A DNA stretch of 64,000 nt from Neoechinorhynchus agilis (GCA_051530055.1 CM121342.1:11609480-11673479); one strand, 5' to 3'; counted from the stretch's first letter, positions 2,134 through 63,986 are shown. The notes: generated by a model from the sequence alone, not told the origin. Program-made: numbers and translations.

Positions 2134-2300
2134 AACTTTTTCTGTTGTTTGCTTATGGCAGAAAAATTGAACGAATTTTTTTATTAAATCCGATATTTCC
2201 GAGGCACAATCTCGTGCCTTTATCAAGGCTGTTTAAGTGTTTTAACATGAATAATTCAATCTTGACACACTTTTTCTATTGCAAATATGCAAGAGTCAGG
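2134..2300. repeat. Dispersed repeat family B (ttatggc-ended) carrying a U3-A8 HHR-like motif on the - strand at 2186-2228
   Basis: Shares ttatggc..aaaatt and aatccgatatttc..ggcacaatc..gtgcctttatcaag with 28347-28513 and 29070-29230. The - strand reads TTGATAA A GGCAC GAGATT GTGCC TCG GAAA TATC. Confidence 0.7.
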
Positions 2301-3350
2301 GCAAACGAAAAGGAATCTTTTATTGGTCCTTATGGATAACATCCTTGATGTATTCGACAACTGACATTCTCAGCTGTGAATGAATTAAAGGATCGAGTGG
2401 ATAATCATTGTCAGCATTGTAACTGACGAACACTTGCCCTTTTGTTATCTTGCAGATCTTTTCGGCTAAAATATCAGCATCCACAAACCGCTGACCCATA
2501 AGACAGCAAACACTTAGAGATGCAAATCCACTTGCAGAATAGTAGTTACATGGATCTGCGTCTTTATAGCCGATTCGTGTTTGGACGTTGGATGATTTAC
2601 AGCAAGACAGAGATGCTCGGCGCGGTTTGGGACGATGATATTTTCGACCCCTACCGAATGAAGTGGACTTTTAATCAAGTTAATTGTGACAAAAATCGAA
2701 CGACTTGAAAATTTGATCACGTCTACGCTTGCACAATGATCTCCGGTTATGTCAAACGCCTTTCTGTAATTCATAGATTGCTTGATGGCCATCTTAAACG
2801 TATTTTTGTCTTCTTAAACCTGATGGTACAGTTTTAAAGAATTAAAAATGGGGTTATTGAGCGCAATTTCGCGAAACGCGTTTAACAATTATTAAAATTT
2901 GAGGCAATGGTTTAATTTGGACGTTCTTAAAAATCTTCAACTGATCATCTTCCAACTATTTTCCAAAATCACACAGACAATTCCCTCTTAAAGAGTGTTC
3001 AAAACATATTCAACAAACACTCTTTTTGAGTAACTATGTTCATAAGGGCTTTTTAAATCAAAGCGGATAATTCTATGAGAAAACTTATTTTGTTCAATGA
3101 AGCCTACAGAACAACTCATTGGTTTATGTGTTTCTAAATAGCTTGTTGCTTCGCACAAGACCAAGTATAATTGTATCAGCGTTTCTCTAAGGCCAAATCG
3201 TACAAAACAATATGATCTTATTGTTCGAAATCGATGTGGGCTCGTTGGTAAGACGCACACATAACCATTGTTCGAAGTTCACATTTGCGCGACCTCAACG
3301 AAGACGACGACAACAACAACGGTTTGGCTTTCCTCCGTTCCCCACGACTA

Positions 3351-4028
3351 CTATTTGGTGGATTGTTGTTCCTGCATTTGCTTCGATAAAGCACCAAAAA
3401 TGGTAACAAATTCATCTTCAGACACCTTTCCGTCTTTGTTGAAGTCAGCCATATCGAGCATCTGCTGAGCTTGCCTATCATCCATCACTTCGCCCAGATA
3501 ACTCATCGCGAGTTTGATTTCGGGCAAAGTAATGTACCCATCATTGTCGTGGTCGAAAACTTTAAAGGCGCACTTCATATCGTTTTGGTCGTGTTGCGCC
3601 TCAACATTCCTGACCTTGTTCATTCGACTAAAAACCGTCTTGAACTCATCGAAGCTCACACGACCGTCTCTATCGAAATCAACCGATTTAATTATGGCGT
3701 TTAAATGAGCCTCCGATTCGTTTTTGCTAAATCGTCTAAGCAGAGTTCGTAATTCCTCTGCACTTATAAATCCATCATGGTTGCTATCACATGCATTAAA
3801 CGCTACAATGACTTCTTCAAGTTCTTGCTTGTTAATTGGCCCTCCGCCTGTAGTGTTATCTTCTTGTTTAGTGGTACTACAATTAGATTTAACGCTCGAA
3901 GCTGCCGTTCTAAGGTCATTTTTGTTCGTGGAGCTAGCACCCGTGGAACGTTGATTTCCACCGCCACCGCCGCAGCACAGTAATCGCATTATCCATGATT
4001 GCTTTTTGCTTTGACGTGACGACGGCAT
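3351..4028 (-). CDS. Calmodulin-like four-EF-hand calcium-binding protein with N-terminal extension
   Basis: Single 225-aa ORF with four loops: DSNHDGFISAEE, DFDRDGRVSFDE, DHDNDGYITLPE, DFNKDGKVSEDE. Confidence 0.9.
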   Translation of the reverse strand: MPSSRQSKKQSWIMRLLCCGGGGGNQRSTGASSTNKNDLRTAASSVKSNCSTTKQEDNTTGGGPINKQELEEVIVAFNACDSNHDGFISAEELRTLLRRFSKNESEAHLNAIIKSVDFDRDGRVSFDEFKTVFSRMNKVRNVEAQHDQNDMKCAFKVFDHDNDGYITLPEIKLAMSYLGEVMDDRQAQQMLDMADFNKDGKVSEDEFVTIFGALSKQMQEQQSTK

Positions 4029-5299
4029 ATTGGGTGGCTAAAATACTTGAAAGGGAATAGAGAAAATGTGGTCTCTTAGTGAAAGGTAGGCGGAGTCGAT
4101 GGAGTAAAGGTATGCGCGTCCTACACACAAACACTGAATCCCCGGCGTTTATTTAGTACAACAGACAGGCTTCAGGGAAAAGAAGATGTGCAATCGGATA
4201 TGGTGCACACTCATTCGGTTGATCCTGACGGCACTCGTCGTTCAGTCTTATGTCGAGTGCAGCATCAAAAGGAAATACCAATCAAAGAACTGTCAAGACG
4301 AAAATGGCTTGCGAAAGCGAGTGAGACCCAAAACATTGGCCTACTAGTTTTTTAATAGGCAACCGAGTGGTAAACACTCTTCTTTTCCGATCTAAAGGAA
4401 CAACAATCATAACAGCAAGCTCACAACTCAGCTAAAAATATAGACGCAAAATTAATAAGAACTGCTTGTTTTAATCGCTTTGCATACTTCAATAAGGTAT
4501 TCACACGAGTTGCATGTTGAGAACAATCGAGCCCCTCCTGAGACACTAAAAACTAATTGAAGCACTGAAAAATCCTAGAAATGCCAGTGAATTAAGTGCT
4601 GTCAAAATTGCTCTGATCAAATTTAAACTAAAAGTGCACACTGAGACGCCCGAGAGCAAGTCTATTGCATCCACCCAACTGTTGGTTTTTTCCGTAACGA
4701 TCTCAAATACAAAATATCGCATGAAACTTGAAGTCTAAATGAATTTCAAAACAAAAATGTTGATTTTTAACGGATCAATCAGCAAGCGAATTATGCGAAG
4801 GAACTTTTTGAGTTTTTTCCCCTGAGAACGTTACAGAGTGCATAAATCCCGCATTTTTAGAAATCTTATCGATTTCGCACGGGGGGGGGAATGTTACAAA
4901 ATCGATAGATATGTAAGAGTCCAAGAAAAAGATGTTCAATAATGATGATAGATAAATATTTCGTCTTAATCAAAAGGCAAAGGGCAAAATGTCTATGGCA
5001 TTTGTACTTCATCAGCTGTTAAAAGCAAACATAAGAAGCATTAATAACACCAAAGATCTGCGAGAGGAAGGGAGTAGTGGATAAACGAGTGTGCCCCAGA
5101 AAGAGGCGACCTTATGATGGATAGAGAACTTCATTATGGGCGGAAAGGCATTTCCCTAACCAAGAAATCGTTTACACGTGCGTAAAGGAAGTAGCAACAC
5201 ACACAGATACAGATTACGTGCTTTCAACAACAAAAACTCAGTTAAATAAATAATGCAAATGCCGGGACAACCTATCGGTCGCAATAAGAATACTTCATT

Positions 5300-8200
5300 C
5301 TATAATGAAGAAATAAGGTTCTTAGCGACCGTATTCGAGAATACCGAAAGTCCTGTTATATGAGCGACTAGCTCCGTCATTCGAGCAAGAACGCTGATCC
5401 AATATATCGGTCTCAGACGATCAATCAACCTTGTAGGAAATAGCGTCTTTTCGTAATTCATACCAGAACATTTACAATACTTCTCGAAGTTGGACATTCG
5501 AACTTCTCGACATTTCGGGCACTGATGGTCTTGAGAAAAGTACTGAACCAGAAGATTATCAACGACGTCTATAAGGAATTGCTCAATGAAATTTACATCG
5601 TAAGGCCGGTGACATCGCAAACATAGCCAGAAATCTTTACGGCCGTCGTCTTCCTCGGTGATTGCACCTCCGTTTTCAATCAGGTTAAACGCACAGTCTC
5701 GAAATAGATCCACATTCAAAACAGACAAACATGCTCCATTGGAGAAAGTCTTCGTTTTTTGAAAAGGAATCAATAAAGTTTTATCAGTGTCGAGAAATGA
5801 ATTTAAAAGACTCCACTTCAGGTCCTCTAAAATCCCATTTGTGTGCCTTTGCGTTTCATTCAAACCAAGCGAAGCAAATGAATCGGCAAAATTGTTTACC
5901 TTTCAAGCACAAGATAACGCATCAATTCCACATGACTGATAATGTTCTTGTTTTCCGGGTATATTGCAAGAGAGAAAACACGGATTGCATTTCGTCCAAA
6001 ATGTATCCATTAACAAAAACAGATTTTCTGAAATTTGTCTAAAAATGCGTAAACTTTAACAAAAACTCGTTTCTATCTAAATCGATTAGTCTTCCAAATG
6101 AGCTCTTTTTATATACTACAATAAAAAAATATCCGTTGTTTAATTTTGCTGCACGAGATAATGATAAGTTTTATAAACGAGAACAAATTCGGTCAATAAA
6201 AAATTTCTTCGTCGTAATGTATCTTTCAAAAATCGAAATAGATTTGGCGACGTGTGTCCTAAGTTACTCGTAGAAGCCCATTTCAATAAAAAATAACAGA
6301 AATTCGTAATGGACGTGCAAAACAAATTACATATAAATCAGTTAATATATCGAGACTATTGCTTAAAATTATTGTTTAGAGGTCTTCACCCGGTAAATAA
6401 TTTTTTATTAAAGACGTTCTGCGAACCTCGTAAGGGGTTAATCATCAGTTTGTTAGTTATAAAAAGACGCTCAAAAACTGATGATGAACTCCTTACGAGA
6501 TTCGCAGAACGTTTTTTAATAAACTCTTTACCGTGTGCGAAGACTTCTAAATAATAATTCTCTAATCATATACAACCCGGTTCCTCCTCTCACATATCGA
6601 CATTTTGAAACTATCACTTTAGAATCATTTGTTTACTCTCTTAACTTGTACTGAAATTGTAAGATAATAAAATTGAAAGCACGAATTCTTTCAATTTTCG
6701 TCCAAGAATTTAAAAGACTTTCTCCGTACAGTAGACTTGAGGCACTACTAAGCTGGTATTAAAACCGACGTTGGCAACCCCTTTGCTTGAATCCCTGGAT
6801 GAAATCAAATGTCCGTATCCAAGATGTTTAAGAAGATCGTGCTCAAGATTGAATATTAGATCGCTTGATAGTTGGTCTACGGACAAAATGGCGCATAGAC
6901 ACCTTATGCATTCCAACGAAGGATTATCCCATGCGAAATACGAGTGCATAAATCTTGGATACACGTCCCGAGGAATATGTGATGTATCTATACTTCGTTC
7001 GGCCCATTTGCTCAGCATAACTGCGTTCCCATTCATTTCGATATTGATGATATTACGTATATTTGATAGGATTTTCGAACCAACTTCATCTGTCTCCATG
7101 TCTGGAAATACGGATGCGTTGACAATCTGAACAGATTTATCAATTTTCGTTACTTCACCAAGTTCCCTTAGAGCGAACTGTTCCGCAATAAAGACTACAT
7201 ATGACCCGATCAGATTAGTTACCTGTTTCCTCAGATCAGAATGGAGATGTCTTAGAAGAAAAAACTTGGCTTCCACGCGTTTCTCATTAAGATTCAACGG
7301 TTCAGTGTTCATTAGTCCGCAGTAGTTAAAGGGATCGACCCATAGAAGTGCATGCCAACACTTAAGCGGTCGGAGACGAGCGTAAGCAAATACTTGAACC
7401 TTTTCTTCAACATCGTCGCCCAGTTGAAGAGCAACTTTTGTGATGTATTGCGCATAATTTATAAGTGGTCCATAGGCTCCATGTTTTTTAAAATTCACGA
7501 TAACCTTCCAAACGTCAGCGTAAACTACAACTCCACCGAGAGACTCGATTTCGTTCAAAAGCAAAGACAGCATTTTCTTCATTGAAAGAATCACAGAGGA
7601 CGCTAGACAGGATTCGTACATGTGAGACGTGGGATTTATAAGCCAGCGGAGAAAATGAGTTAGAAGGGTATCGGCCATTTGATTCTTGAAATGCATGGCG
7701 TCGTTCATCCATGCACTTACGGTATTTTTTAAGATCCGTAACGATGAACATGACATCATAAAAGTATCACTAAAAGCGCCTGATGCGGATGGACCAAGGT
7801 TAGGAACTCCTGTTAGACCCACATCGTTTGAAACACCTGCAGCATTTTGATCTATGACTCCGTCGATTTCGTTCAAACGGCTAATGCCCAATAAAGCACA
7901 AGCAGCGAGGTTAATGAGTTCGAATTGAACACATGCTGAAGTGTACACTGAAGGTTGATTTACCATTGCTTCACACACGGCTGTAGGAGAGACGGGAATG
8001 TGATTGTAAACCATAGGAGAAGTTGAAGTTACATCGGTGTTGGTTGACCACCATAAAACATGACCGGTGGATTGAAGGTTCCTTGCGTAGAATACATCGC
8101 ATGCAAACGAAATCGCATCATCCTCGATGTTTCCTAATGGAATTTGGTAATAACGCGATTGCTCAATCTTGTACGATAAAGAGAAATTCGCTGATAGGTA

Positions 8201-11200
8201 TGAAGAAACAAAGTGGCGAGAAATGACAGTTAATCTCTTAAAGTTCCTAAAAATTAGCCGCAAACCCAATAGACAAATTGCCTCGAAATACAGCCAATTC
8301 CAGTCAATCGACAAACGGTCCGATTAACCATATTTGACTGTATGCTTAAAGCTCGTAAACAAAAATGCGGACATTCACATAACGCTTGACGTAAATCTTC
8401 ATTTCTCCTGTCGATATTGCTCTACCAATAATACTAAAAATTTAGTATTTTTATACAGACTGTGCGATTTCAAGCACCTCAGGGGAAAAAATTGAACCTT
8501 GTCCATTTTAGTAGATAATAAAAATGCAAAATTCTACCTAGATCTGAGGGGAGGGTTACATCTTTTTTTAAAGCACTTGTCAGAACTAATGTCAATGTCT
8601 AAGCTTCGTCAAATGATTATTTGAAATTTAAACGTATCAATTTGACGTTGATCGTATCCAAATTATTTTTAAAAACTTTAATTTCAATTACCGCCGTAAA
8701 CAATAGAGATTAACTGCACTTTAGAGAATCCTGCCACTCATCGCCTTTGAGTCGAGCATTATCATTAAAGGTTAGTCTCACGATTGGCGAATCATTAAGA
8801 CATGGAATTAATTGTCGCAGTTCATCGCTTAGAGCGGATGAATGTGTAACGATCATATGAGCAATTCTAAGATTACCATTTTCTTCAACACTTGAATTAA
8901 CAAAATCCATAATTGTAGTGTTCAGAAGACTATAAAGCTCCTCGGCTTGTTGAACCACGCGAACTTGAAATGTGTGATCCTCAGGTGGATACAGAGACTC
9001 ATCGACAGCAGCATTCTGAGTTCGTTTCCTTCGTTCTGCTAAGAAAATCTTTCTGAGATTAGGTAAACGATTCTCGCCTCTGTGATTGAGCACGAAGACC
9101 CGTGCTATCTTGCGCGATATTAAAACAACGGAGGCGAATGCAATTTCACGAACTCGTTTCCTCGAACGAAATCGTTTTCGGTAAAAGTAAATATAGACAG
9201 TCTCTGGAAGCACGTCCTCTGCTAAATACGTGAGTCGACTTTCAACTGGATCTTCTCTTATAATCTGATCTAGAGTGAGTGGCCCATTTCGGTTTGTGTC
9301 CATGGTGCACATTGTACCGGTTTCGATTATAAATCGAAGGATAGGAGAAGTCTGCAGTTCGTAAATGCCCAATACATCGCCCGAATTGCAAAGTTCAACT
9401 GTAATCTCATGATAATTTTCAATGAAAAACTTTTCCGGCACAATATATTCGTAGAGATATTGGGTACGGGCACCTCGAGGTAATATCTTTTGTGTTAGTT
9501 TGCAATAATCAACTTCCTCGTCCATTTTAGTTTTCCGATTTACGTAAAATTTACGATTTAAACGAACGGTATAAGAAAAATAATGACCATCTTCGTTCAT
9601 CGTTATAATGCGGGCAAATCCACGCGAAAGTGGAAAGATCTCAAGGATTTGAAGCGTGTCTGTGATTTGAGATTCCCTGATAAAATATCGAATATCATTG
9701 GCTTGCACGGTGTCGGCTTTCTTCTTATTCTTTAATCCTGGTTTTTTCGTCCTTGATCGACATGGCTCTTGTACTAGTTGTCTCCACATTTGCTTATAAA
9801 AACGAATATATTCAAGAAAAGATTGCCTTGAATGATTTAGGCGAATGCGATGAACCGGTCGAGTTTGTGCGGGGTTTGAATTCTGTTCAATTGCTTTAGC
9901 AGTTACTTCGTTCGGCGTTCGATTAACCTTCGGCACAGTTGCCACTGTAGGTACTTCCTTTTTCTCAACATTGAAAAAATCTTCAAGTCGCTGCTGTTTT
10001 GAAGTACTGAATTTTTCCATCAGCCTTTTTTGCAACCAGTCCGGGTAAGGCACACGAGGAAGTGGGTTGGATATGTTTTGAAACGAAGCAGGTATTGTGA
10101 TGAGTTTTTGAAGACATCCGTTAAAGCGGTCAATATAATAGTCCCAATCAATGTGATTACGAATGTCAAAATTACCAAGATCAGGAAGTTTAAGCCATTT
10201 ACGCAGAAAGTGCCGTTTAATAGCAGGTTCCGCCTGAAATATCGCGACAGGAATAGCACGATCAGCAATGGGTGCACCTTCAGGTCTTCTAGAAATAATA
10301 AAACGGCAAGTCAGACCTTTGTCCTTTATCATCTGCTCACCGAGAAATTCCGCTAAACGCTTAGCCGTCGAAATAGACGTTGACTTCTGCGACCCATAGT
10401 CACTCAATTGCCGAGACATACGTCTATTTTCAGCAATCAATTCAAACAACTCATCGTCACTTAATCCACGACCCTTGGCGTGTAAAATATCGAGCCAGTA
10501 ATTGGCTACTTTGGCCGCTGAGTGATAGCTCTGATCGAGAGTTTGACCGTTCAAGAAAGCCTCAAACACTGATGACTGGAATATTTTTATAAGTTCTAAT
10601 TCGCCGTTCCGCTTTACCTCGAATCCTTTCAATTCGGCAATCGTTCGGTCGAAATTGAAAACACAGTAACGTTTCTTAATCCTCTTTCCTTCTTCCTTCG
10701 AAGCTGGTAAAATCATCGCATGATAGGGACCGTCTACCTCGAAAAAGATTGAATTCTCGGATTTTATGACATATTGAATCCGCCTTCGTTCCAGTCCATC
10801 GGTATCATCATCTAGCACTAGCTCATGATATTGATCATTCGTAAAATAATCTTTTATTGGGACGTAATGGGACGAATTATATGAAGGTTTAAAAAAATCC
10901 AGATTTTGAATGCTATGACATTCGAGTTGAAGGGAAATTGTGAAAAAAAAACGTGACGAAATCTCTGTCAGTTTACCAAGATTCTTTTCCGTGCTGATTT
11001 GTAAATAGCAGACACAGAATCGAAGAGTAATTACACATAGATAACTTCATGAAAGAATAAAAAAAATCATTTCATTTGCAAATTTTAAGGAATACGAAGA
11101 AAAGGAGAGTGAATTTCAGCATTGAAATCCCTGCTACTCTGAACCATTTTGAGAAATGGTAAGTTTACGATTGTTCAAAAACTAAAACATTTGAAAATGT

Positions 11201-14200
11201 ATGCAAAACGCGAGAAACGCGTTCAAAACTGCGAATGACAAAAATATTGAACCAGAAAATCACGACTTATTTCGGCCACGTCTCTTTACGCCCTTTACAA
11301 GAAGATTAAGTATTGCACAAGGATACGAAACCTTAAAACTTCCGCTTTCGCCCATGTCATTGATTGTCTTTACAACAAAATTCGAAGGAAAGGACGATGG
11401 AAGCATGCACCATATACCATCGGTATCGAGTTCTAAGGGCATTCCAATTTGATCAACAAGGATCCTCGCTTTCGTTATAATCAAAGATCCCGTATAACAG
11501 ACAATACCGGCCATTTCGAGACTGTGCCACCTAGCTCCTTTTCTCATAACATAACCATAGAACGAATTCAGGATACATTTGTGGGCCATTTGAAGAGAAT
11601 CATAGAGCACAACCATGTTAGAGCAATACCTAGCGTGGTCGGAATCCTTCGAATGTTCTAACTCAGATTTCCATTTCTTATGTAAACTCTTAAACTCATA
11701 CCGGCGATCTCGGAATGCCCGAACAGTGTCAACATAGAATGAGTTTTCTCGCTGGCATATCACAGTCTCCTTTTTTTCCTCACGAACAAAATGTATCCTT
11801 TTATAAACCTTTTTGCTATAATCTGCTAAACGCTTCTTTTCCAGTGATGATCGTTGTTGAACTGGTAAAGCGAAATACGATCGGAGTGGCTGGTTTGCAG
11901 ATACTGGAAAACGTTCTGATTCCAGTTGAGCCTTCACTCGTTGTACTTCAACTCGTGTAACTGGCATGTACTCTGTACGCGACACCCATTCCATTGAACG
12001 TTTGCATCTTGCGTTAGGAGCATTGAAGGAACAAGTGGCGCAATCCATTCGAGTTACAATCGCAGAAGGTTGAAGGCGATTTGTAAGGATTATGTTCGGA
12101 TACATTGCGCCAACATCTACATGCAAATAATCTCTCGCTTTTTGTTAATAAATTAAAATAGCACTGCTCATTTTTTATTATAATTTTAAATTAGTTTCCT
12201 CGGAGGAAACGTTCCTGCAGAAAATAGGTGAAAATTCGTATGTTCGAGATTAGAAAATAAAGCGGCCTCAATATATTGTTTATTGAGATTATTTACGTAA
12301 GTGATATATGAATGGAAGTTCTTTGACAAAAGGATTATCTCTTAGTATAGACAATTTCTCAATGATTTCCTCGCTTACTTCTTTTAGATTTGTAACATTA
12401 CTGAGATCAACGCCTTCGGTTTCAATCGCTAGTTCCAATGTTCGATCAACCTTTTGAATAAGGTCCTGTATAGCTACGGGTGACGTCTTAAACTTTATCG
12501 GTATATCGCTTCTAAATACTCCAGACTCGAGAGCCTCAACACTCGCTCCTACATAGGTTTCCTGTTCAATGAGATGACCATCGTTTGTGTATCGGTCAAC
12601 TGGACTCGTCTGTCTATTAGGGAAAATCACATTTGCTTTGAACGCTTCAGCCATTAGAAGCCCCTCACATAATGTACTCGATCCGTTCCTGAGGACATCA
12701 TCAGGACCAAGAGGAATGATTGTACAAAGGGCAAAAATGAACGGATGAACGTATTTAGTATAGAGATAAAATGTCGCCACAGCGTCCGATACAGAATACG
12801 TACAGAGTAGTTGTGGATGCTCAGCGGCGTATTTACACATGAGTTCTGGATCTACTTCAACTGGATCGTATCTTAACTTCGCTTTTGTAACGGCCTTTAA
12901 TCCCTGGCTACCGATTGGTAGATAACTATCTCTTTTGACCCATTTCAGGCAATCCATATGAACAGCAGGACGGCATAAATAATCTTGGACTTGTCCTTGT
13001 TTTGAACTTTTCGCGAAACCAGTTTCGACAGTTAAATCGATCCCATGCTGAAGAGCTCGGGTTTCTATAAAAGGCCAATCAAATGAATCGCCGTTATAAG
13101 TAACAAAAATTAGCGGACGAACGCGTCCAATGTGGTCGAAAAAGTAATGCAAAACGGATTTTTCATCTGGTAGGTTGATAACTTTAAAATGACCCGGAAA
13201 TTCCTTTTTAGGAGTGTACTCAAAATCGCTTACGTCTTCACCGATAATTTCACGATTATTCACAAGAAACCCTAGTCCATCGTACATATAAGAAATCATC
13301 ATTATTTGATCGATACTAGCGTCCGGGAATTTAAGTGGCGATTTGGTAGTTTCTATATCAAAGGCAAAAACACCAGGATCTGGCTGCTGTAAAAGCAAAG
13401 GTTGCGGCGAAATAATGTAGCTTTTTTCGGAACTCAAATCAGTTGTAACACGACTAACTTCGTACCACAGGCCAGTGCATAAATTAAGATCAATGGCAGC
13501 TCGTGTTACAAATGGCACATCGTACTCACGAATATCAATCACATACTCAAGTGGCTCTCCAGACATTTTTAAAGATGAACTATTTTCAGTGCTACTCATA
13601 GCAGTCGATGTATCGCCCGAAATAAAGGAAGCAGTTCGAACCTGGTGTCGGTGGTTAATAGACCTCGATTTCAAGGCGAACGGCATCAACTCACGGCGAG
13701 CAGCGTTCATGTCATCATTGTTGAAAAAGCAGAGGCGAATACAAGAACGACGAAGACCAGTCAAATGATTATTGAGACTAAGATCGTCTTTCTCCACTAA
13801 AGAGATGGATGAAAGCTTGTCTGCATATTTGCGAGCCAATCGAGTCATTATTTCTCGACTAAACTCGTCTCGTGGAATCACATAAAAGTACGGTCGAACC
13901 AGTTGAACCACCTTAAACCGATTTGAATCGTTCGCTATGAAATACAAATTCAAAGCAGCCATAAATCGGTGATCTTCTTTATTCAGCACCTCAGTCATCT
14001 GCATATTGAACAGCCATCCAACACGAGATTCTCCTGCCGATGTGAACTCTTCAAATCCGTACAAGGAATCGACACGAACGTTTTCTTTGATTTTCAAAAG
14101 TTTACGTGTACTTGTAGCCTCAGACGAAATAGAAAGTGGTGCAGATTGAATAGCAAGGTCTGTAGCTTCCAAATCAATTGCAAACTCATTGTCTGCTCCG

Positions 14201-14223
14201 AAATGAGTGTCTTCATCGTCCAT
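5300..14223 (-). CDS. POLE: DNA polymerase epsilon catalytic subunit (multi-exon)
   Basis: Exonuclease motifs [26 protein letters not shown]. Polymerase motifs [42 protein letters not shown]-terminal Cys motifs CLRC and CPKC...CKC. ORFs 12289..14223, 11260..12126, 8710..10818, 6710..8314 and 5300..5863 are collinear. Confidence 0.97.
6366..6602. repeat. Family C palindromic element in a POLE intron: ~190-bp imperfect inverted repeat plus a one-sided tail, with an HHR-like core in each arm
   Basis: Left arm ttagaggtcttcacccggtaaa...gacgttctgcgaacctcgtaaggggttaatcatcagttt pairs with right arm aaactgatgatgaactccttacgagattcgcagaacgtt...gaagacttctaa. The tail cctcctctcacatatcgaca recurs inverted at 48386 and 23849. 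Confidence 0.8.
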
Positions 14224-22450: not shown

Positions 22451-22518
22451 TCACACTCAATCTGCGGATACCGCCAGATAAACGAAATTGAGTTCTTCTT
22501 GGATGCATTTTAGATAGA

Positions 22519-48545: not shown

Positions 48546-48572
48546 CGAAAATTGAATTGTTCTTTATGGTTC

Positions 48573-49191: not shown

Positions 49192-49554
49192 ACTTTGACT
49201 AACCCGAAGGATTTTTTATCGATGATTATCCATTAATGATTGACAAGTGAGCGCTTCCACATAAAAAACGGACAGCCCTAGAATTCTTCCGTAGCTACGT
49301 CGAATAAAACAATGGTCCAAAAATATCGAATTAAATTGCGCACTGCTGATTTAAATTCGATTTGATGAAAAAAATACGGGTTAATCTTCATTCGGGGACG
49401 GGAATGCCAGACCGAGCTTGAACGCACCACCGTTTTCTACGACGAATGCCAAAGGCCACTGTAGTCTCGTCGGATTCAGGGTGGCTTTATCAGCAAACTA
49501 AACGCCATACCGCCACAAATAAGGTTGTAGAAAGATAAAGAAAATCAGATTGAA

Positions 49555-49790
49555 AACTGCATTCGGCTGAGTGGTTAGAGATATCTTTTTGTTTATGTCG
49601 CTTGCTGACACCCGAGGGAGAGGTCGCGTTAAAGAGACGAATGTGTATTTCGACCTATTGAATCAAAGTCATTTGATCAATTCAATTGCTTGTATCGATT
49701 GATTCAATAGGTCGAAATACACATTCGTCTCTTTTACGCGATCTCTCTCTCGGGTGTCGACAAGCGACCTAAACAGTAACAAAGAAAATC
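49555..49790. repeat. Family E palindromic element (77-bp arms, 32-bp spacer, one-sided tail)
   Basis: 49590-49666 pairs with 49699-49775. The tail gcattcggctgagtggttagag is shared with 44895 and 62830. Confidence 0.85.
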
Positions 49791-49828
49791 GTATAAGGTC
49801 AAGTTGTTGCTTTGATTGGATAGTATAT

Positions 49829-50430
49829 TTGTTTTTGTGACGTCTCTCACCCACACATTTATTTGATCGAATTTTCGAGACTCGCCGGTCTCCTCTTCAG
49901 GTGTTGTCAACATCTAAAACACAAACAAGCGCTCGCTCAACATAAATTTACGTTTTGACTCGGGACCCCGGGTCCGTCATGCCCGTTAGCAGAGGCGCAA
50001 TTTTCCGTGCTGCTACCCTGGGGGGAACTTAGGTCGTGAGCGGATATCTGTGGCTGATAACTCCAGGGTCACATTCCCTTTGTTGCCTTCCATACGCTCT
50101 TGTCGCTCGGCCTGTTCTATCATCATGGACTCCATTATGAGCCTTCGTTGTAGGTGATCCTCACTCACTAGCATTGCTGCATTTTCAAATCCGATAGAGT
50201 GCGAGTTTTGGTGCGCATCGCTGACGTCGGGCACCCCGTCCGCATGACATAACGGTGTTGTCTAATGCGCTTGCCTAGCGGGCCCGGAGTCCTGAGTCAA
50301 AACGTAAATTGATGTGTAGCGAGCGTTTGTTTGTGTTTTAGATGCTGACAACACCTGAAGAGGAGACCGGCGAGTCTCGAAAATTCGATCAAATAAATAG
50401 ATGTCTGGGTGAGAGACGTCACAATAACAA
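49829..50430 (-). mobile_element. Penelope-like element remnant: GIY-YIG 3' fragment between ~150-bp inverted pseudo-LTRs, each with an HHR motif
   Basis: Arms 49829-49975 and 50280-50430 are inverted copies. The core on - encodes TPGPLGKRIRQHRYVMRTG.PTSA / HQNSHSIGFENA..L..E.HLQRRLIMES..I (PLE GIY-YIG C-terminal half). HHR CTGAAGA G GAGAC CGGCGA GTCTC GAA AATT C at 50355-50386 (+) and 49869-49900 (-). Confidence 0.82.
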
Positions 50431-50620
50431 TAAAGAAAATCTTTATTTTCGATCTTCTGCCATCTTCTTCAGGAATATACAAAGACGCGTGGAGTTGATT
50501 GAAGTGTGCTTTAAAGTAGCTACATTGAAGTGTGTGTGTGGAAAGTTCGTTATCGATCTAAGCCATCCTTCAATGAATGTGAAAATGAAATCCCCTCAAT
50601 TTAATACTGTTTCAAAAATG

Positions 50621-50752
50621 TCGGATTTTAAAAAATTCTCCCCGCTGATTGATTTCTCCGATATTTCACGTGTTCGATAATTTCCCTACATTTTCTTAAC
50701 ACGTGAAATACCGGGGAAGTAAATCGGGGAGGGTGAATTTTTAAAAATCCGA
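50621..50752. repeat. Inverted-repeat element (~55-bp arms) with remnant GAAATATC / GAAATACC
   Basis: tcggattttaaaaaattc...ccgatatttcacgtgtt pairs with aacacgtgaaataccgg...gaatttttaaaaatccga. Confidence 0.75.
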
Positions 50753-50882
50753 GATGTCTTAAAATAAGAAAAAGAAAGTATCTTCCCCCGCCGAAGATAT
50801 ATGAATTATTGGGTGTTTTTTTCAACCGCATGGTCATAATCTTGTGAAATACTATTTGATTTTATAGCCGTCATAGTTTCAG

Positions 50883-53170: not shown

Positions 53171-53184
53171 TTTGATTAAATTTT

Positions 53185-54968: not shown

Positions 54969-57201
54969 GTGCCTATAATTTTTATTCAAACTTGCGAAAC
55001 AAATTGCACGACGCAGTTAATGACGTCACTACATACCGCTGCAACGACCACGCCCGATACGACAACCGCCGCGCCTGCTCGCTCCGCCCGCCCGCAAGCA
55101 GGTGAGCATTTCCGCCTCTGCGATCTCCGAATTGCAAAGGCTCAATGTGGAACCTGCCAAAGGACTTTCGAACCTTTATCTAGCGGACTTGTACGTTCGC
55201 ATGGCAAGCGTAACTCTCGTTGCCCAGGTTCCGGAAAAACCAAATCATCTTTTGGATCAACAGGCAGTCATAAGCAAACCTTTGGACGTCGAGTATCTCG
55301 TTATTCACATTGACCGACTAGCCTAGGACGCCAATATCGAGTTCAACGCACCTCCGGATTCCCAGCAGCAGGCTCCATACGTTCCCACATCATGCTGTTC
55401 GATTTGCAAGGGTATTTATCCGTTGACGAAGATGGGCGTCCTCAGAGTACATGGGCCCAAAGACTCCCGTTGCAAAGGGTCTTCTTTACCCCCACATTCT
55501 TACCAATCGTCCCCTCGTAGCTAAAACACCGACTTTGATTTTATTCACAAAATGCGGAGCTGTTCGACTTTTAGCCTCAGCCGAAGATTTCGCCCCCAAC
55601 CATGAAGCCACGTATCAGGCTCTTTTAAATACGCACCCCAATTTTAGTGGAGCGACGGTGTTTAACTTTCCACAAGTAGTGCCGGACCCAACTTCCGTCA
55701 ATGAATTTAAAAGGGCTATTTCCTCCCTCGCCAAGGGTTCATGACACGGACCTGACGGTTTGCGCCCTCAACACCTAAAGGATATGTTATCCTTCTCGAC
55801 CTGTGCTGCGGGTAAAGTCCTGGAATCTGCTCTGGTCAGAGTGGTTGACCTTTTCATCCGGGGTTCTCTTAGTGAATTCGCAATCCTGCTTTTCTTCTCG
55901 GCTTCTCTCTGTGCGCTTTCGAAAAAAGATGGCGGGATTCGTCCCATCGCAATCGGCTGCAATCTTCGGAGACTTGCAGCTAAAATAATATGTAAGAGAG
56001 TTTCGCCGAAATTGGGTGGGGTGTTGAAGCCTTTCCAGCTAGGATGCTGCACACCTTGTGGTGCCGAGGCCATTACTCACGCACTCCGCGACCATCTTGA
56101 AGTAGCAAAGGCTCCTTTGGTCGTCTTAAAGTTAGATTTTAAAAACGCCTTCAACTCCTTCCTCAGAGAGAAAATGTTAGATGCCATCAAAGATTTTATC
56201 CCTTAAAGTTACCCCCACCTTTTATCAGCCTACTCCAATAAAACCCTTCTCCTATACAACAATCAGTTTATTTGGTCCCAATGCGGTGTCCAGCAGGGTG
56301 ACCCCTTGGCCCCATTGGATTCGCGTGTACAATCAATGAATTGGTACAATCACTAATTTCTCCTTTCAACGGCTGGTACCTGGATGACGCCACACTCAGC
56401 GGTGATCCCCAGGTTGTTTTAAGGGACTTACAAGCTGTTATAAGCGAAGCAGAAAACTTGGGCCTCGAACTGAATTTCGAAAAATGCGAAATCCTTTTTC
56501 AGGGATTCGATGACAGTTCACGTTCGACGATCATCGCAGATTTTCGGCAAGTTGCTCCCGGGGTGCGCGAGGTTACAAAATACGAATTTAATATCCTCGG
56601 AAGCCCCATTTTCGCCGAAAATGTCTCAAAGGACCTCGAGGCCCACTGTCGCAGCGGCTCTATAGTTGACGCTAATGGCAGACGCGGCTTCTGTTGTATA
56701 ATGTCCAGAGGGAGGTTTCCAAGACACGCAGAGTTGAACTCAATTTTGAGTAGAGCCCTAGATTCCGTTCACGTGCCTAATATTCTAGAGCTGAGTAATT
56801 TATGCCGCCTAGACCGCAAGCGACCTGACGGTGTCACGGTTTTTCCATGGCGGGAGGGAAAACCGCTTTTATGGGATGCGACTTGTGTGGACACGCTTGC
56901 GCCCAGTAATTTTCCCTTTTCAAAAAAGAGCCTTGGAGGTTCAGTGGTCGCAGCTGAGGAACGAAAGCGTTCAAAATATAGAGAGCTATTAAGGAATTAC
57001 CATTTCGTCCCTTTCGCCGTGGAAACGTATGGAGCCTTGGAACCGTCAGCGCTCACTCTCCTCGGCGATTTGGGACGAAGGACGAAAAGAATGACGGGGG
57101 AACCGCGCTCTAGAAATTTCCTCGCTCAACGAATCGCAATTGCGATACAGCGAAGCAACGCTGCCAGTATACTGGCAACGTCGGGATGTTTACAGGAATA
57201 A
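54969..57201 (+). mobile_element. CRE-like non-LTR retrotransposon, most complete copy (two N-terminal zinc fingers, RT, restriction-like endonuclease), internally deleted and frameshifted
   Basis: Zinc fingers CGTCQRTF...HGKRNSRCPGS and CSICKGIY...HGPKDSRCKGS. RT motifs GPDGLRPQHLKD, KKDGGIRPIAIG, KLDFKNAFN, GVQQGDPL, WYLDD. Endonuclease RPDGVTVFPW...WDATCVDT...FAVETYG...IAIAIQRSNAAS. The thumb/linker region is deleted near 56640. Confidence 0.92.
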
Positions 57202-57639: not shown

Positions 57640-60600
57640 TTATAAATCTTCATAGGCATTATCAGATATTTTCGTAAATTCGTTAGAGCTCGTAAAGTAT
57701 TCGACAATGTCAGCTTCGGAAAAATTCAACCGAACATTAGAATCAGGATAGCATTGGTGCATCATGTCACAGTAATGTCTGTATTGAACAATCAGAAGTT
57801 CCTGCAAATCATGCCATATAACCTATCGATGAATAAAAATAATATTCTTATGATCGGTACAAAACGGATACTTACTTGTGACAACGAACTGTTATTTGAA
57901 ATTTGCTGCTGAAGTTGCCTATGAAGAGAATCAAGACTTCTTACAACCTAGACACGATGAAATGTTCATATTTGTTCAATAAAATTACTTCGCTCCATGG
58001 ATTCTCTCTAATGAGCCTTTTAAGGTGAGCAACCGATAAATCATTCTGAAACTGTATGTCCGACGGCCTTATGCCGGCCTCGATCTTTTGCTCAATTTTG
58101 TCAAAGAATATCTAAATATCAAGTAGATCAGCTAACGGAATTAAAAGATTACTCAACAACATAAATCAGTGTTTTTAAAACACGAAGCAAGTTACAAATA
58201 ATTGCCCTGTGAACGTTTACTCACATACATGCCCTTGAACGGTTTCCCAAAATACTTGTCAACGAATAGCGCCTTGTAGTTAAGATATCGCTCCTCGGCT
58301 AACTTGCGATCACCTTCAAAACTCTGAACTTTGCATAATCTCAGAACGTCTGAAAATGTGCTTAATAATAAAAGATACAAACGTAAGAAATCGATCTAAC
58401 TTACGCTGTAACTGGTGATAATTTTCGATGCAAATTAAATGACCAGGTACTACGTAATTATCGATATTGGCAGCAGATTCGATCTTTTGAAATATAGTAT
58501 GGATGATTTTGGCGTAAACTCGATCGAGGTCTACTCTTCGAGACGATAAAGCGAAAATGCTTTCAGCCTCGTCTACAAACTCCTTTTTAAACTATGCACT
58601 TAGGTGAAGTAGAACTCGAAGGTAAACCTGAAAAAAATTGACAAATGGCAATATGCCAACAGCTCGATTTCTTGTAATTTTGTACTGTGATATTGCTCCA
58701 CATACTTCTTCCTTCAGAAAATGTGATTAATTTTCTCTTCACAACGAATAAGAAACTAACAGCATACCGGTCCACTGCTCGTTTTGCGATGATCAAAAGA
58801 CCTGCAATGGTTTTATTACCAAAATAGTTATTGATTGTCAATGTCTTTTGATTGTATGCACTGATTATTTCAAACAAATATATACAGTTGCTGTTCATCG
58901 GTTCGCTAAGTTTAATAGTCAATACGATCAAATACTCACAAGTGGTCTAAGCTAATGAGATAAAATAAAAGCGATTGGAGTTCAGTACCGATTGTCGTAA
59001 ATACACCGGCCATTTGTGATCTGATCCGTAGACTTGTTCCAATGTCTCCTTTCCTGGAGCCACCTCCACTGCTACTACCAATGGTGCCAGTATCAACGTT
59101 TCTACTCGATTTGTCTAAACTTTGATTATCCATGGAACCGCCTATACTACTAGTGGTTAGTGGTCGCTGCTGGTCGCTAGAAGACGATGAAGTCGGCGCC
59201 GCGGCTACTTGATCAATTTTGCATTTAAACGACTCCTGGAAGTCGTCAAGGAAACTCGATTGACTTTCGTTCGGATCGTCATTCATTCCAAAAAAATCGA
59301 CAAAAAAATCGTGCTGCTCTTTCATACTTTCTAAGACATTATCCAAGGTTTTTCTCATTATCTAAAGACGGAATAACATATATTTTACAGTTTGTTAAAA
59401 TTGGATTAAGTTATACTTTTGAGATACTTTGCCTTTGACTCTTAGATTTTGATGGCTGAACAAGGGGATCCATTGATTTGGACGAAAGTGTTAAAGAATC
59501 ACTGCGTTGCTTGTTAACTGTTCTAAACACTCCATCCATTGTTACAGACCCTAAGCGAAGTTAAACTATAAACACTGTTGATGAACCGGATAGAACAAGA
59601 TCATGCCAGGATCCGGGCCTTTTATATCATTGTTACATATTAAAAAAGTTACTATTAAATTCAGCAATTATAAAGTTAAAAACTATTTGGATTGAATTTT
59701 TGTATGGACGGTTGGAAACCGCTATTATTTTGTAGTAGAAAGATCTGTACAACTTGGGTTCATGTTAATAGCAATTGATTTGTAGTGTTATAAAATTTAC
59801 TGTCAAATTCAGCAATTATAAAGTTAAAAAATATTTGGATTAGCGTCGTTTGTGTGTTTGCTGATTTCAACCTACAAGTAAGCCCTTTTTGAATACACTT
59901 TAAAAAGGGTCGTCTTCGTTCGAATACGTTGGAAAATTAAATTAAATAAATACCTGAAGTTACTTTTCTTTGGCCATATTCATTCGAAGCCACTGTTTTA
60001 GCCAATTCAATGAATTTGGAAATCTCTTTATCGTAAATCGGTGCAAGTGACATTTTGAACACCTTTTTTTGAATTGGAAAGCATAGGCCAAAACGAAATA
60101 CGAACCTTACTAAGCTGTCGAACCAGTTCTATGTCTGCGACTTTAAGCCATTTGCAAAGTTCGGAATATTTGCAAATGTGAGCAAAAAGTTCACGATGAT
60201 GAGGGGAATCCTTTTCATTCTTAACAGGTTTAATATCCTCTGCTGCAATCGATTTTCTAATTTGGTCCGATAAGAAGTAGTAAATCTTTTGAATTATTCT
60301 ATTCAAATATTCGGTCAACTGCAGCTTTGTGTCCCGGATTGCAGCAAGGTTTTGTTCGAGTGAATCGGGAAATACAACTCGGCAAGCAGTCAATACTTTA
60401 TTTGCAATTGTAATAGAGCTTGAAATTACTTGATCATCTTTGAATCCTTCGTCAACAACTGATTCCAAATAGTCCAATTCATTTTGATCAACATCTAATG
60501 TGTCCTTTATAAGATTTTTGTACCTAGTCTATAATAAGTCCTTTAAATTACTTACCACAATAAGCTGCAGGAGTTGTTCAAGTCGAACCCGATTAGTGTG

Positions 60601-62184
60601 CTCCAATTGAATTAAAGTGTCTTTGTCACTCATCACTTTTAAAAGATAATGGATTCGCTTTCCTTTTATTTGATAGCCTTTGGATTAATGAAAAATAAGT
60701 GAGAAAAAACAATTGAATTCACCAAATAATTCTCAAAACAGACTTTTCAATCGACTGGGGTTGGCACGCCACAACATATGAATTTTCAAAGAGGATTACA
60801 CATTATCTAGGACGACAGTGAGGATTAATTCATATAATTACCATAAGCAGTAGTATCTAGGGGCCAACTTTTGATCAAAACCGAATTTTGCCACTTAGTC
60901 CAATATTATGCAACAACCGAGCTTGTCCTCCTATCGTACGTTATGGCTGTAGTTCTAATATTGTCGCTTCTATAGATCAGAATGGGATTTCTGGTTTTAT
61001 TAAAAAAATATACTTGTGTTCTTAACAAAAATATCGACTGCTTTAAAAGAAGATATCATGTGTCGCCATTACACCACTACTTGTATTTTAGAACTGATGA
61101 TGAACCTGATGAAGTTCGCAAAACGTCTTTAATAAATAATCATTTACCGCGGGTGAAGACTTCTAAACAACACTTTTTCCCTAGATGGTTTTAGAGAAAG
61201 CGAATCATCATCGTTTACAGCATCAGCTACCAGCTAAATAGTTAAAAATAGCTTGGAAATAATCTTGATCTGACGACAGTACTCACATCGAATCTGGCTT
61301 CAAAATTTGAAAGTTTATCTTCGATTCGTGTTAAGTCACCAATAGTATCATCTAATTTGTTCATCATAACCAAAGCATCTTCTTCGGCTCTCATAATAGT
61401 GTTCACGTTGGCCTGTCACAGAAATTATGTTAACAAAAAACAATCTAAGCTTAATAAATCGACGAACAGAATCGAGTTCGGCAAGTCGCTTGCTCATTTC
61501 ATTCATTAAATGATCGGCATCTTTGAGTTCGATTTCCCAATCAGACATGAGACCGATCAGTCGTTTCTGTTCTTCGTCAGTGATTGCCTGGTAATTTTTA
61601 AAGTCTTCAAAGACACTTTCTTGAGTTACTGCAATGTCTTTCAAATCTTTCAGAATTGACAATGAGTGTGAACAAAAATAACAGAATACAAACTAGATAT
61701 TTCGTCTGACAGTTTAAAATTGACAAATACCGGTGATTGATCGTTTCTCAGATAATGATTCGAAAGCTTAAAGAACTACAAAGTTAAACATTCTATTATA
61801 TGCTCTTTTTCATACTTTATACAGCGCCAACAGAATATTGTTTTTGTCAATGGGATTGTCGCATTGAATTCTGTAAGATTTCTGGAGTTCCAAATCAAAC
61901 CTCAAAGGTTCATCAGCACGGCCATCAATTGATTTTACGTTCCTAAGAAGAATAGTTGATTTTTTCTTGAATTCGTTTGATTTCTCCGATCGTTTAAGGT
62001 AATGAATAACCGGTTGAGCTTCACCATCTAATAAGATATTAGCAGCCATATAAACGTTCCGTTCGTCTCGTTTCTTCTTTGTTAAATCGGTTATACAGAC
62101 AACGCAAACACATCGTTCATTATTTGGAAAGAATAAGTTCTTGTTCAGATTATCTCTGAGTTCCGTCTTTGCTGAGTTGGACAT
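57640..62184 (-). CDS. EXOC1: Exocyst complex component 1 (Sec3), multi-exon
   Basis: N-terminal PH-like LFFPNNER...FDLELQKSY; YQAITDEEQ...ELDS|ANVNTIM; C-terminal SQ|VIWHDLQE...HQCYP...FSEADIVEY. Stop at 57640-57642. Confidence 0.9.
59649..59841 (+). repeat. Pair of 45-bp direct repeats in an EXOC1 intron
   Basis: ttactattaaattcagcaattataaagttaaaaactatttggatt at 59649 and a near-identical copy at 59797. Confidence 0.75.
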
Positions 62185-62704: not shown

Positions 62705-62862
62705 TTACTGTTATTTGGCGGTCGCTTCTCAACATCCGAGATAGGAAAATACAAGTAAGCTTTTGATACATTCGTCTCTTTAACGCGATCTCTCTCGGGT
62801 GTTCATGAACGGCCTAAACAAAAAGAAATCTCTAACCACTCGGCCGAATGCAATCGTCAATA
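62705..62862. repeat. Family E copy, inverted and internally deleted
   Basis: cattcgtctctttaacgcgatctctctcgggtgt...cctaaaca...tctctaaccactcggccgaatgca matches 49715-49775 and the reverse complement of the tail. Confidence 0.8.
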
Positions 62863-62907
62863 AAACCTTACTGTTCGAATCTCCTCAGAAGAGATTTGCG
62901 TTTCTGT

Positions 62908-63267
62908 TCAAAGATCGATTCCCCAATAATGAGACCATCGCCGTACAATCAGCTCATTTTTTAGATTCCACATAGGAACACCGACTGTTTTTTGTCCTTT
63001 TTCATTTTGTTCAATACAATCCTTAATCAATGACACTCTTCGTTGGCTTTCTGAATTCAACTTCTCATGAAGTTTCCTGCACTCCGATTGCCTATCAATA
63101 GAATGATCGCCGCTTTGTAAGGTTCGATTGATGACATTGACGATCTTATCATCCGTGTCTCTCGATCGTCGCAATGCTTGATCAAAAAGTCGCACATGAC
63201 TGCAAATATGAACGCTATCTTTAAAAAAATCGTCCAACGCGTTCACTGGTTTCTTTAAATCGCTCAT
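62908..63267 (-). CDS. MIX23: MIX23/CCDC58-like mitochondrial intermembrane protein (first exon)
   Basis: C...FDQALRRSRDTDDKIVNVIN...CRKLHEKL....RR...IKDCI...LKNELIV matches the CCDC58 pattern. The last exon is unresolved. Confidence 0.72.
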   Translation of the reverse strand: MSDLKKPVNALDDFFKDSVHICSHVRLFDQALRRSRDTDDKIVNVINRTLQSGDHSIDRQSECRKLHEKLNSESQRRVSLIKDCIEQNEKGQKTVGVPMWNLKNELIVRRWSHYWGIDL

Positions 63268-63680
63268 TTCTTTAATCCGTGAATTACCACGACGAAGTAC
63301 ACTCCTTCGAAGTACAAGTTCTTCCGACGATCGTCAGTCTTTTGTATGTCAATCGACTTCACCACATTGAACCAATTGAACGTTATTGGGTTTTTGTGTC
63401 AAAGATATCCCGGATCGTCAGTTTAAAACTTAACTGCAATTTTTTGCTTACGGTAGCGATTTGTTTCATCTTAAAGTAAGCATTCGTGTACTCCAAGAAT
63501 ACCTCACAATTCCTAATCATTTCCAGATTTGCGATATTGGGACTCATGTTCAATTGTAAATCTGAGCATGGTAACATCTAATAGATTCCAAACGCAATAT
63601 CGTTTACTTTCAATTATGTTTTAACATTGAACTAAAAAATTAAAGTAGTTTTTTATGAAGATTGGACAGCCGGTAATTTA

Positions 63681-63986
63681 TATCGATGTGTGACCTTTTA
63701 TCACACGGCTGTTAATTTTTGGGCGCACAGCCCACCGACCTTGTTCAGAGAAGTAATTCAATTACTCAAAGCACTGAACCATCCGGTACGAGTTTGTACA
63801 TTCCTCCGGATCCTCAGATACCTCCAGGAGGCTGGACTCATCAGTGAGTTTCCTCCCTTCAGCGGTATTTCGTCCCCTTTGGCTGTGCGTCATTGGTGGT
63901 AACGGATTCGAACCACTTGACCCCTAATCGGGATCACGGGCCTCCAAAAATTATCAGCCGTGTGTTAAAAAGGCCACACATTGATA
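63681..63986. mobile_element. Family D full copy: non-autonomous element with ~42-bp terminal inverted repeats
   Basis: tatcgatgtgtgaccttttatcacacggctgttaatttttgg pairs with ccaaaaattatcagccgtgtgttaaaaaggccacacattgata. The internal sequence is shared with 22850-23010. Confidence 0.8.

Follow-up and report, generated by a model that had tools for sequence, protein, structure and literature searches.

Minimal hammerhead modules in a compact animal genome: probable debris of Penelope-like retroelements

Introduction

A 64-kb window of the Neoechinorhynchus agilis assembly GCA_051530055.1 (chromosome CM121342.1, 16.4 Mb, near 11.61 Mb), the whole stretch of DNA analysed here, contains short repeats with hammerhead ribozyme-like motifs, many of them arranged as palindromes, and raises the question of whether these motifs are genuine hammerheads and what kind of mobile element dispersed them. 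The motifs form a real, non-random population, which exceeds chance expectation, covaries in its helices, shares a body plan of leader, hammerhead and tail, and sits in insertions of a recognisable anatomy. It is also less well preserved and of a more uniform origin than an earlier reading made from the DNA alone (the sequence-only reading) proposed. The modules are probably the hammerhead-bearing 3' or pseudo-LTR (long terminal repeat) parts of Penelope-like retroelements, or non-autonomous elements dependent on them, mostly in a decayed state; self-cleavage, action as dimers and mobilisation by a Penelope-like enzyme are what we infer for them.

Hammerhead motifs and background expectation

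The window was searched with a strict descriptor composed of a CUGANGA (C3-G8) or UUGANAA (U3-A8) core, 0-1 extra nucleotide, a perfect stem II of at least 4 bp, GAA, one of the palindromes AUAU, AAUU, ACGU or AGCU, and H, with 200 dinucleotide-preserving shuffles of the window as background. Five matches were found against 0.07 +/- 0.27 expected, with core positions at 28634(-), 33900(-), 49114(-), 49900(-) and 50355(+), and the looser pattern of the sequence-only reading returned six against 0.12, so that the comparison with shuffled sequence named in that reading separates the motif from background under both patterns. In all five strict matches the conserved core C3-U4-G5-A6-N7-G8-A9...G12-A13-A14, A15.1-U16.1, H17 is exact, the palindrome is AUAU or AAUU, and helix III has no loop. 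An extra nucleotide follows A9 in 5/5, where the descriptor permitted 0 or 1, and stem II is closed in every case by a G10.1-C11.1 pair that the descriptor did not demand. Furthermore, the copies at 29147(-) and 2226(-) reach the core through the co-variant UUGAUAA, a family in which C3-G8 has changed jointly to U3-A8. Hammerhead motifs are thus present where they had been listed, with the exception of the 162-bp tandem array, the locus at 22519 and the family around 6413, which fail the conserved-core requirement and hold no intact motif; two further modules, the best-scoring copy at 33863-33905(-) and a defective partner arm at 28694-28738(+), had been missed.

It is extremely improbable that a permissive pattern simply matched AT-rich repeats by chance, with copy number swelling the total. 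The earlier pattern was indeed loose (Y3, R8, any N7), the copies of the array and the two arms of a palindrome do not count as independent, and the gap-tolerant descriptor finds 0.74 matches per window by chance. Against this stand the strict matches, which come from four families, as well as the recovery of left-out copies by a covariance model and the compensatory changes in their stems. A control in metagenome contigs argues in the same direction: the exact pattern with a family-specific leader gave 0 matches, a generic pattern (core, G..C stem ends, GAAAWWU and AATAAA) gave at least 120 loci, and among the matches listed stem II pairing was bimodal, 42 having 1 bp, the chance class, and 53 having at least 5, a clean split between chance and structured matches.

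Covariation

The covariance model, R1, was built from five copies only and run unfiltered over the window. Besides its own seed sequences it recovered the left-out copies at 28595-28639(-) (31.1 bits), 2186-2231(-) (27.2 bits, E 4e-4), 28694-28738(+) (22 bits) and 22514-22556(+) (18.4 bits, E 0.07), and nhmmer with a sequence-only hidden Markov model added degenerate copies only. Covariation was counted on an alignment of all R1 matches with E<0.08, comprising 17 distinct sequences, in which standard pairs fill 94% of pair cells; shuffles reach 59.5%, and displacing the partners by 1-3 columns gives 4-44%. Six of the seven pairs carry changes on both sides. Within stem II, four of five pairs show two-sided changes (95% of cells paired), and G10.1-C11.1 is G-C in 15/17 sequences; within stem I, the first two pairs, beyond which there is a mismatch, are paired in 91% of cells and both covary, with pair 1.1-2.1 never broken (CG, AU, GC, UG). 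At the level of individual loci, element F (49028-49192) and copy E (33863-33905(-)) have identical 13-nt upstream flanks, and their stems II differ by a compensated change of G-C to A-U (GCGAGG/CCUCGC in F, GCAAGG/CCUUGC in E). By this measure the motifs appear to be of hammerhead type with real compensatory change, and the earlier claim that stem II keeps its pairing while its sequence changes is borne out.

Shared body plan

Aligned on the predicted cleavage site, the copies have a leader, a hammerhead and a tail in common. The leader ACTTACAAACAAT is identical in F and E and one base off in element C (28526-28783), and takes the form GCAAACAAT or GCGAAACAAC in copy D (29110-29152(-)) and the array, while ACTTACAA[A/G]CAAT lies upstream in F (49114), E (33900) and C (28634). 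In most families AATAAA follows 2-22 nt downstream of the hammerhead, and the element ends near CATAAACAA or a similar sequence. Counted from the cleavage site, the 3' end lies at 39-40 nt in C, G (49781-50441), D, B (28344-28516) and J (6367-6559) and 43 nt in A (2186-2231(-)), with longer tails of 48 nt in the array unit, 54 nt in the family at 49590-49775 and 56 nt in F, whose end is different from CATAAACAA; these figures exclude copy E, the 3' end of which is not mapped. The description of the families as sequence-unrelated and devoid of shared flanks does not survive the leader common to F, E and C and the AATAAA tail of most families, and with their common flanks and body plan they are diverged members of one superfamily.

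The near-constant tail length, together with the common leader and tail motifs, provides a modest lead on the start point of the Penelope-like reverse transcriptase (RT). A more far-reaching proposal, which we hold to be doubtful, is that a unit of ~100 nt represents the minimal mobilisable cassette of lineage-specific Penelope-dependent elements, with the hammerhead and tail, not coding sequence, being recognised by the reverse transcriptase. Such a cassette may consist of an ACAAAC-rich leader, a minimal hammerhead and, in most families, a ~40-nt AATAAA tail ending near CATAAACAA. If this were true, the distance from cleavage site to 3' end would mark the internal initiation site of the enzyme, and the compact genome would offer a tractable system for the unsolved Penelope-like transposition cycle and the role of the hammerhead in it.

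A separate observation concerns splice-like signals. Reverse-complemented, the ACTTAC of the conserved leader gives GTAAGT, the consensus of a 5' splice site, and the CTGAAGA of the core gives TCTTCAG, which resembles a splice acceptor; on the antisense strand, for example at 28626-28650(+) and 49106-49130(+), the module looks like a tiny exon between splice signals.

Insertion anatomy

Every palindrome examined is arranged head-to-head, with the 5' parts in the centre and the 3' tails pointing outward, and the arms are cut at varying inner (5') points, some of them inside the hammerhead. In element F, the minus-strand copy is long and carries an intact hammerhead at 49078-49119(-) (CUGAUGA-G-GCGAGG/CCUCGC-GAA-AUAU-U; strict descriptor; R1 44 bits), and its inverted plus-strand partner is reduced to the last 31 nt (49162-49192), so that the arms are asymmetric. 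Element G, located by an inverted-repeat search, comprises a head-to-head pair at 49829-50430 with two intact hammerheads, at 49863-49905(-) and 50350-50392(+) (both strict matches, R1 43 bits each), flanked by a 10-bp target duplication AAAGAAAATC (49781-49790 and 50432-50441) and extended on one side by 38 nt (49791-49828). Element C is a palindrome with a perfect junction (28561-28772), its arms of 106 nt meeting directly; the hammerhead at 28595-28639(-) is intact by the strict descriptor, the partner arm at 28694-28738(+) is defective (C3 changed to A, stem II mismatches), and a 12-bp target duplication ACATTCAGGTAT (28526-28537 and 28772-28783) is accompanied by a 23-nt extension on one side (28538-28560). 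Copies also occur alone, as in E, a solo strict match with an intact CUGAAGA-G-GCAAGG/CCUUGC-GAA-AUAU-U between an upstream ACTTACAAACAAT and a downstream AATAAA, and the best R1 match (48.4 bits, E 1e-9).

The palindromic form also invites the view that these are miniature inverted-repeat transposable elements (MITEs) or foldback DNA transposons, with the hairpin serving as DNA-level terminal repeats, for example as transposase sites, and the likeness to a hammerhead being incidental. Short palindromic elements with conserved outer ends, clustered at 28.3-29.3 kb and 48.4-50.8 kb, would suit this view, as would the fact that Rfam sees the palindromes only as weak microRNA (miRNA)-like hairpins, and that B, the 49590-49775 pair and J have only 7-mer flank matches, which are at chance level. 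Target duplications are, in fact, convincing in C and G only. These two, however, are unequal (12 and 10 bp) and displaced by one-sided extensions of 23 and 38 nt, where a MITE would have its terminal inverted repeats at the very ends and duplications of one fixed length; the arms are unequal, with the losses on their inner (5') side; 48 nt separate the hairpin from the end; not all copies are palindromic, since E, D, A and H stand alone and others form a head-to-tail array; and there is no DNA-level reason for the exact catalytic core, the joint change between C3-G8 and U3-A8, the extra nucleotide or G10.1-C11.1. A DNA-transposon origin is therefore quite improbable, and the palindromes are best read, as the sequence-only reading held, as inverted pseudo-LTR pairs: the insertion anatomy is the published signature of Penelope-like elements and not that of a MITE. 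A Helitron 3' hairpin was considered separately and ruled out, since there is no CTRR end, target duplications are present and the hairpin lies 48 nt from the end.

Decayed copies and related loci

Several copies retain the plan of the superfamily with varying degrees of damage. Copy D (UUGAUAA-A-GUCAC/GUGCC-GAA-AUAU-C, found by the relaxed descriptor) has the U3-A8 core, one U.C mismatch in stem II and a 40-nt tail ending in CGTCATAAACAA, and scores 41.9 bits with R1 as a seed. Copy A, found by the gap-tolerant descriptor, has the same U3-A8 core and a well-paired stem II, from which G12 is set off by 2-3 additional nucleotides (UCG), and belongs to one family with D (80% identity over 90 nt; blastn against 29072-29155). 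The 6.7 kb that precede the window on its left hold one further degenerate UUGAUAA copy. Element B (28344-28516) is a head-to-head inverted pair of degenerate copies of the UUGAUAA family, with broken cores and tails ending in CGCCATAAACAA or CGCCATAAATAA. At 28920-29081, another degenerate head-to-head pair (R1 15 bits each, E about 0.5) keeps CUGAAGA in the left arm, with GAA lost, and GAAAUAUU in the right arm, with the core lost.

Truncation has proceeded further in the inverted pair at 48549-48715, which is cut inside the hammerhead, leaving only ..GUCGAAAUC and the tail, with arms ending in CGCGCCATAAAAGAACCA and CGCGCCATAAAACAACCA, respectively, and in the pair at 50610-50763, whose arms start at ..CACGUGAAAUAUCGG, inside the hammerhead, so that only the 3' half and the tail remain. 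A related family at 49590-49775 forms an inverted pair (UUGAUUC..GGUC-GAAAUAC) with stem II lost and a tail ending in CATAAACA, and has further copies at 44859-44974 and 62768-62861.

Two loci proposed earlier as hammerheads fall out altogether. Copy H (22514-22556(+); core at 22519), which adjoins the array and is a degenerate relative of the family of G, keeps its CUGAAGA core and GAA-AAUU-A, with a poorly paired stem II and an R1 E value of 0.07. Family J, represented by the palindrome at 6367-6559 (CUGAUGA-U-hairpin-GCA-GAACGU; noted earlier at 6413, 6478, 23924 and 48482) and further copies at 23873-23970(-), 48434-48541 and 61092-61177(+), has three additional nucleotides ahead of GAA, no pairing of A15.1 with U16.1, a hairpin almost without covariation, a rival hairpin GUUC-GCA-GAAC and R1 scores of 10-13 bits at E>1, and is not credible as a hammerhead; by its flanks it is nevertheless a member of the same superfamily. 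Its palindrome at 6367-6559 lies between the open reading frames (ORFs) 5300-5863 and 6710-8314 of a DNA polymerase epsilon gene on the minus strand and is, from this position, probably intronic.

A repeat of ~200 bp (22846-23040 and 63716-63907, 73% identity, sense on the minus strand) shows CTGATGA ~25 nt downstream of GGAC-GAAATAC, i.e. the motifs in permuted order, and its 22.9-kb copy is bounded by CATAAACAA on both sides. A type II (permuted) hammerhead was ruled out here, as the stems do not pair in register; the repeat may be a composite of the same superfamily. Directly upstream of the 63.8-kb copy, GGTTCGAATCCGTTACCACCA (63900-63925(-)) resembles a tRNA T-arm and acceptor and could be the head of a tRNA-derived short interspersed nuclear element (SINE); it adjoins a weak SmY match (E 3.8) at 63919-63996, and an ARAGORN scan of the window called zero tRNAs.

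The 162-bp tandem array

Tandem Repeats Finder and unit alignment define an array at 18144-22448(-) of 162-bp units, 26 of them hammerhead-bearing. Each of these carries a degenerate hammerhead of the minimal type and, after it, 48 nt of tail with an AATAAA inside and CCAAACAA at the end. In ten units CTGAAGA (CUGAAGA) and a 5-bp stem II are followed by GAAATAAT (GAAAUAAU), the change of U16.1 to A abolishing the palindrome; seven have G5 changed to U; and five combine UUGAAAA and AUAU with a stem II shifted by one position and closed by a U-A pair. R1 scores range from 14 to 45 bits. With all 26 units defective in these ways, the array, which had been counted among the hammerhead loci, is probably a dead satellite.

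In the units at 18653-22448(-), the first half reads CAAACAAAG..UUGAGGA-U-AAAGCA/UCCUUU..UUGAAUUU, with UCGAAAAUUU instead in three units; this motif has a U3.G8 core and mostly lacks GAA. It could be a second, far more decayed hammerhead, in which case the unit would have begun as a dimer of ~81-nt modules.

The array bears on another possible origin, namely that the hammerheads are real and the elements are not derived from Penelope-like ancestors, being instead independent ribozyme-bearing retroelements of a non-LTR retrozyme or SINE-like kind, moved for instance by the RT of a long interspersed nuclear element. Non-LTR retrozymes are 150-450 bp tandem repeats with type I hammerheads (Cervera and De la Peña, 2020; PMC7229834), and the array resembles those of metazoans in its head-to-tail layout, its one type I hammerhead per unit, its low GC content and a unit length near the reported range; in addition, the window has no Penelope-like ORF and the elements are tiny, about 100-600 bp. 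A retrozyme proper would have a functional hammerhead in every unit and be expressed as circular RNA. The array hammerhead, however, is of the minimal type, lacking a helix III hairpin, that is reported for Penelope-like and Terminon elements, whereas canonical retrozymes have loop 1-loop 2 contacts; inverted truncated pairs and one-sided tails are specific to Penelope-like elements; and a 2026 preprint makes the case that the retrozymes of animals derive from Penelope-like elements (Li, Clavereau and Pollet; 10.64898/2026.07.22.740005). An origin outside the Penelope-like elements is consequently unlikely.

Proposed mechanism and opposing evidence

As debris of Penelope-like elements, the modules would have been generated as follows. 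The sense-strand module comprises a ACTTACAAACAAT-like motif, C/U-UGAN-G/A-A, one extra nucleotide, a stem II of 5-6 bp closed by G10.1-C11.1, then GAA, AUAU or AAUU, H, the predicted cleavage site and an AATAAA tail (~40 nt in most mapped families). A read-through or tandem transcript would fold two such modules into a double hammerhead, with helix III formed as an intermolecular 4-nt palindrome; cleavage after H17 would trim the RNA to unit length, and the RNA would perhaps be circularised in retrozyme fashion. A Penelope-type RT/GIY-YIG protein, encoded elsewhere, would copy this RNA from its 3' end by target-primed reverse transcription, yielding 5'-truncated copies, target duplications of variable length and one-sided tail extension, and a second, inverted and truncated copy at the 5' side would create the head-to-head palindromes.

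Several observations weigh against this reading and its mechanism. No RT or GIY-YIG sequence was found among the window ORFs of at least 150 aa, all of which are host genes or lack a Pfam match, so that the Penelope-like link rests on anatomy and the literature. Stem I amounts to only 2 bp, a mismatch and 1-2 bp, a weakness already noted in the sequence-only reading, and helix III could form only between two molecules, as four A-U pairs; moreover, a palindromic insertion supplies one sense and one antisense copy per transcript and hence no cis dimer. Most copies have core or stem defects, including all 26 array units, among which the descriptor finds no intact hammerhead. The alignment used for covariation was fitted to the R1 structure and the families are related, so that independent covariation events are few. 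Published minimal hammerheads show low in vitro cleavage (PMC4209133), and in the Anolis element hammerhead mutants left in vitro insertion unimpaired (PMC11167929). Furthermore, the helix III palindrome of E and F is part of a longer one, the 10-nt GAAAUAUUUC (33869-33878 and 49084-49093), and the predicted homodimer would pair G12-A14 with U17-C1.2 in competition with the active fold. As a modelled structure, this homodimer fold could act as an inactive alternative or a switch.

Equally relevant is the behaviour of the Rfam hammerhead models, a search named in the sequence-only reading, which gave no match in the window at gathering score or even at E<=10. This outcome is expected, as the literature, too, finds minimal hammerheads only with special descriptors; since Rfam models miss this class, genome scans need a dedicated descriptor or model. 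All that Rfam returned at E<=10 on the palindromes were weak sub-threshold matches to plant and insect miRNA precursors, at 49627-49739, 28607-28727, 6421-6505 and 48444-48531, which might be taken to mean that the long hairpins are host miRNA or small interfering RNA precursors conserved for small-RNA biogenesis. The scores lie far below gathering thresholds and fall on unrelated plant and insect miRNA families, a generic long-hairpin signal, and such a role would leave the solo copies, the array and the conservation of the catalytic core unexplained; it is very improbable. For annotation, the 'MITE-like' palindromes and the 4.3-kb satellite can accordingly be assigned to Penelope-type hammerhead debris, and not to DNA transposons or miRNA genes.

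Genomic setting and other repeats

The window belongs to a compact animal genome with ~38% GC and large exons. The gene for the catalytic subunit of DNA polymerase epsilon occupies 5300-14223 on the minus strand, its exon sharing 36-48% identity over most of its length with the best database proteins (molluscs, insects and a Rotaria rotifer). Other genes encode an EF-hand protein, two HSP20 proteins, a DEAD-box helicase, a protein kinase, a PI3/PI4-kinase and a VWA7-like protein; the HSP20/alpha-crystallin genes form a tandem adjacent pair at 29532-31248(-), directly downstream of the insertion cluster at 28.3-29.3 kb. In addition, a repeat of 280-440 bp with ~66% identity occurs in three copies (17110-17550, 45491-45928 and 56710-56987(-)) that overlap ORFs without a Pfam match, and a 54-bp direct repeat (59640-59693 and 59788-59841) has copies 148 bp apart with 91% identity.

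Comparison with known systems

The window copies have the nucleotides of the catalytic core and the hairpin of stem II in common with the Rfam models Hammerhead_1, Hammerhead_3, HH9, HH10 and Hammerhead_II; those models, however, presuppose that helix III is closed and helix I genuine. The closest counterpart is the minimal hammerhead (min-HHR) of metazoan Penelope-like elements, as defined by Cervera and De la Peña (2014; PMC4209133). It lacks helix III and is presumed to act as a dimer. Positions 15.2-16.2 are palindromic, a nucleotide is left unpaired where A9 meets 10.1, G10.1-C11.1 is highly conserved, and helix II is longer, with helix I short and ill-defined; a U3-A8 covariant core occurs in Schistosoma Penelope-like elements, many divergent consensus families coexist per genome, and copies are mostly solo, with additional opposite-strand pairs 100-700 bp apart (PMC4209133). 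Cleavage as a dimer is attributed to Lünse, Weinberg and Breaker (2017), as cited in PMC6765202. The window copies agree with this class in type I topology, the extra nucleotide, G10.1-C11.1, the palindromic 15.2-16.2, the U3-A8 variant, a long helix II and a short helix I, as well as in their divergent families, solo copies and opposite-strand pairs. The earlier description of the architecture as non-standard thus fails, since every oddity, from the extra nucleotide to the inverted pairs, is already in the published min-HHR. They differ in a helix II of 5-6 bp, vs 7-8 bp in the Schistosoma min-HHR, in a helix I that is weaker still (2 bp, mismatch, 1-2 bp) and in the lack of flanking RT or endonuclease ORFs in the window. 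The leader ACTTACAAACAAT and the ~40-nt AATAAA tail were not found described in the cited min-HHR and Penelope-like literature.

At the level of insertion, Penelope-like inserts are heavily 5'-truncated, occur as partial tandems, have an inverted 5'-truncated copy adjoining the 5' end, and bear a tail of 30-40 bp on just one of their ends (Craig et al., 2021; PMC8557442), a tail that the Anolis Poseidon study ties to internal initiation of reverse transcription (PMC11167929). The window copies share with them the 5' truncation, the inverted truncated partner, the partial tandems, the one-sided tail, the tendency to insert beside earlier copies and the position of the hammerhead near the 3' or pseudo-LTR part. 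They are, by comparison, extreme truncations, with arms of 31-150 nt and extensions of 23 and 38 nt, and only two of their target duplications are statistically convincing.

Metagenome contigs provide a further parallel. A high-copy family from one metagenome (Ga0126336_... contigs; loci L025-L121), which belongs to the structured matches, has the form CUGAUGA-A-GGUGAG/CUCACC-GAAAUAU-U, with a 4-bp stem I (GCCC/GGGC) and AATAAA directly next to it, and often occurs as head-to-head pairs (L043, L085, L091). On contig L093, a truncated ORF at 3-941(+) with a weak GIY-YIG match (21.8 bits vs a cut-off of 22.6), for which a homologue search gave 2 uninformative matches only, ends 200 nt upstream of a minimal hammerhead (L093:1143) on the same strand, as would be expected of a Penelope-like 3' end. 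Altogether, the window members are new and the kind of element is already known; they leave existing knowledge unchanged and add one lineage to a pattern that has been documented since 2014.

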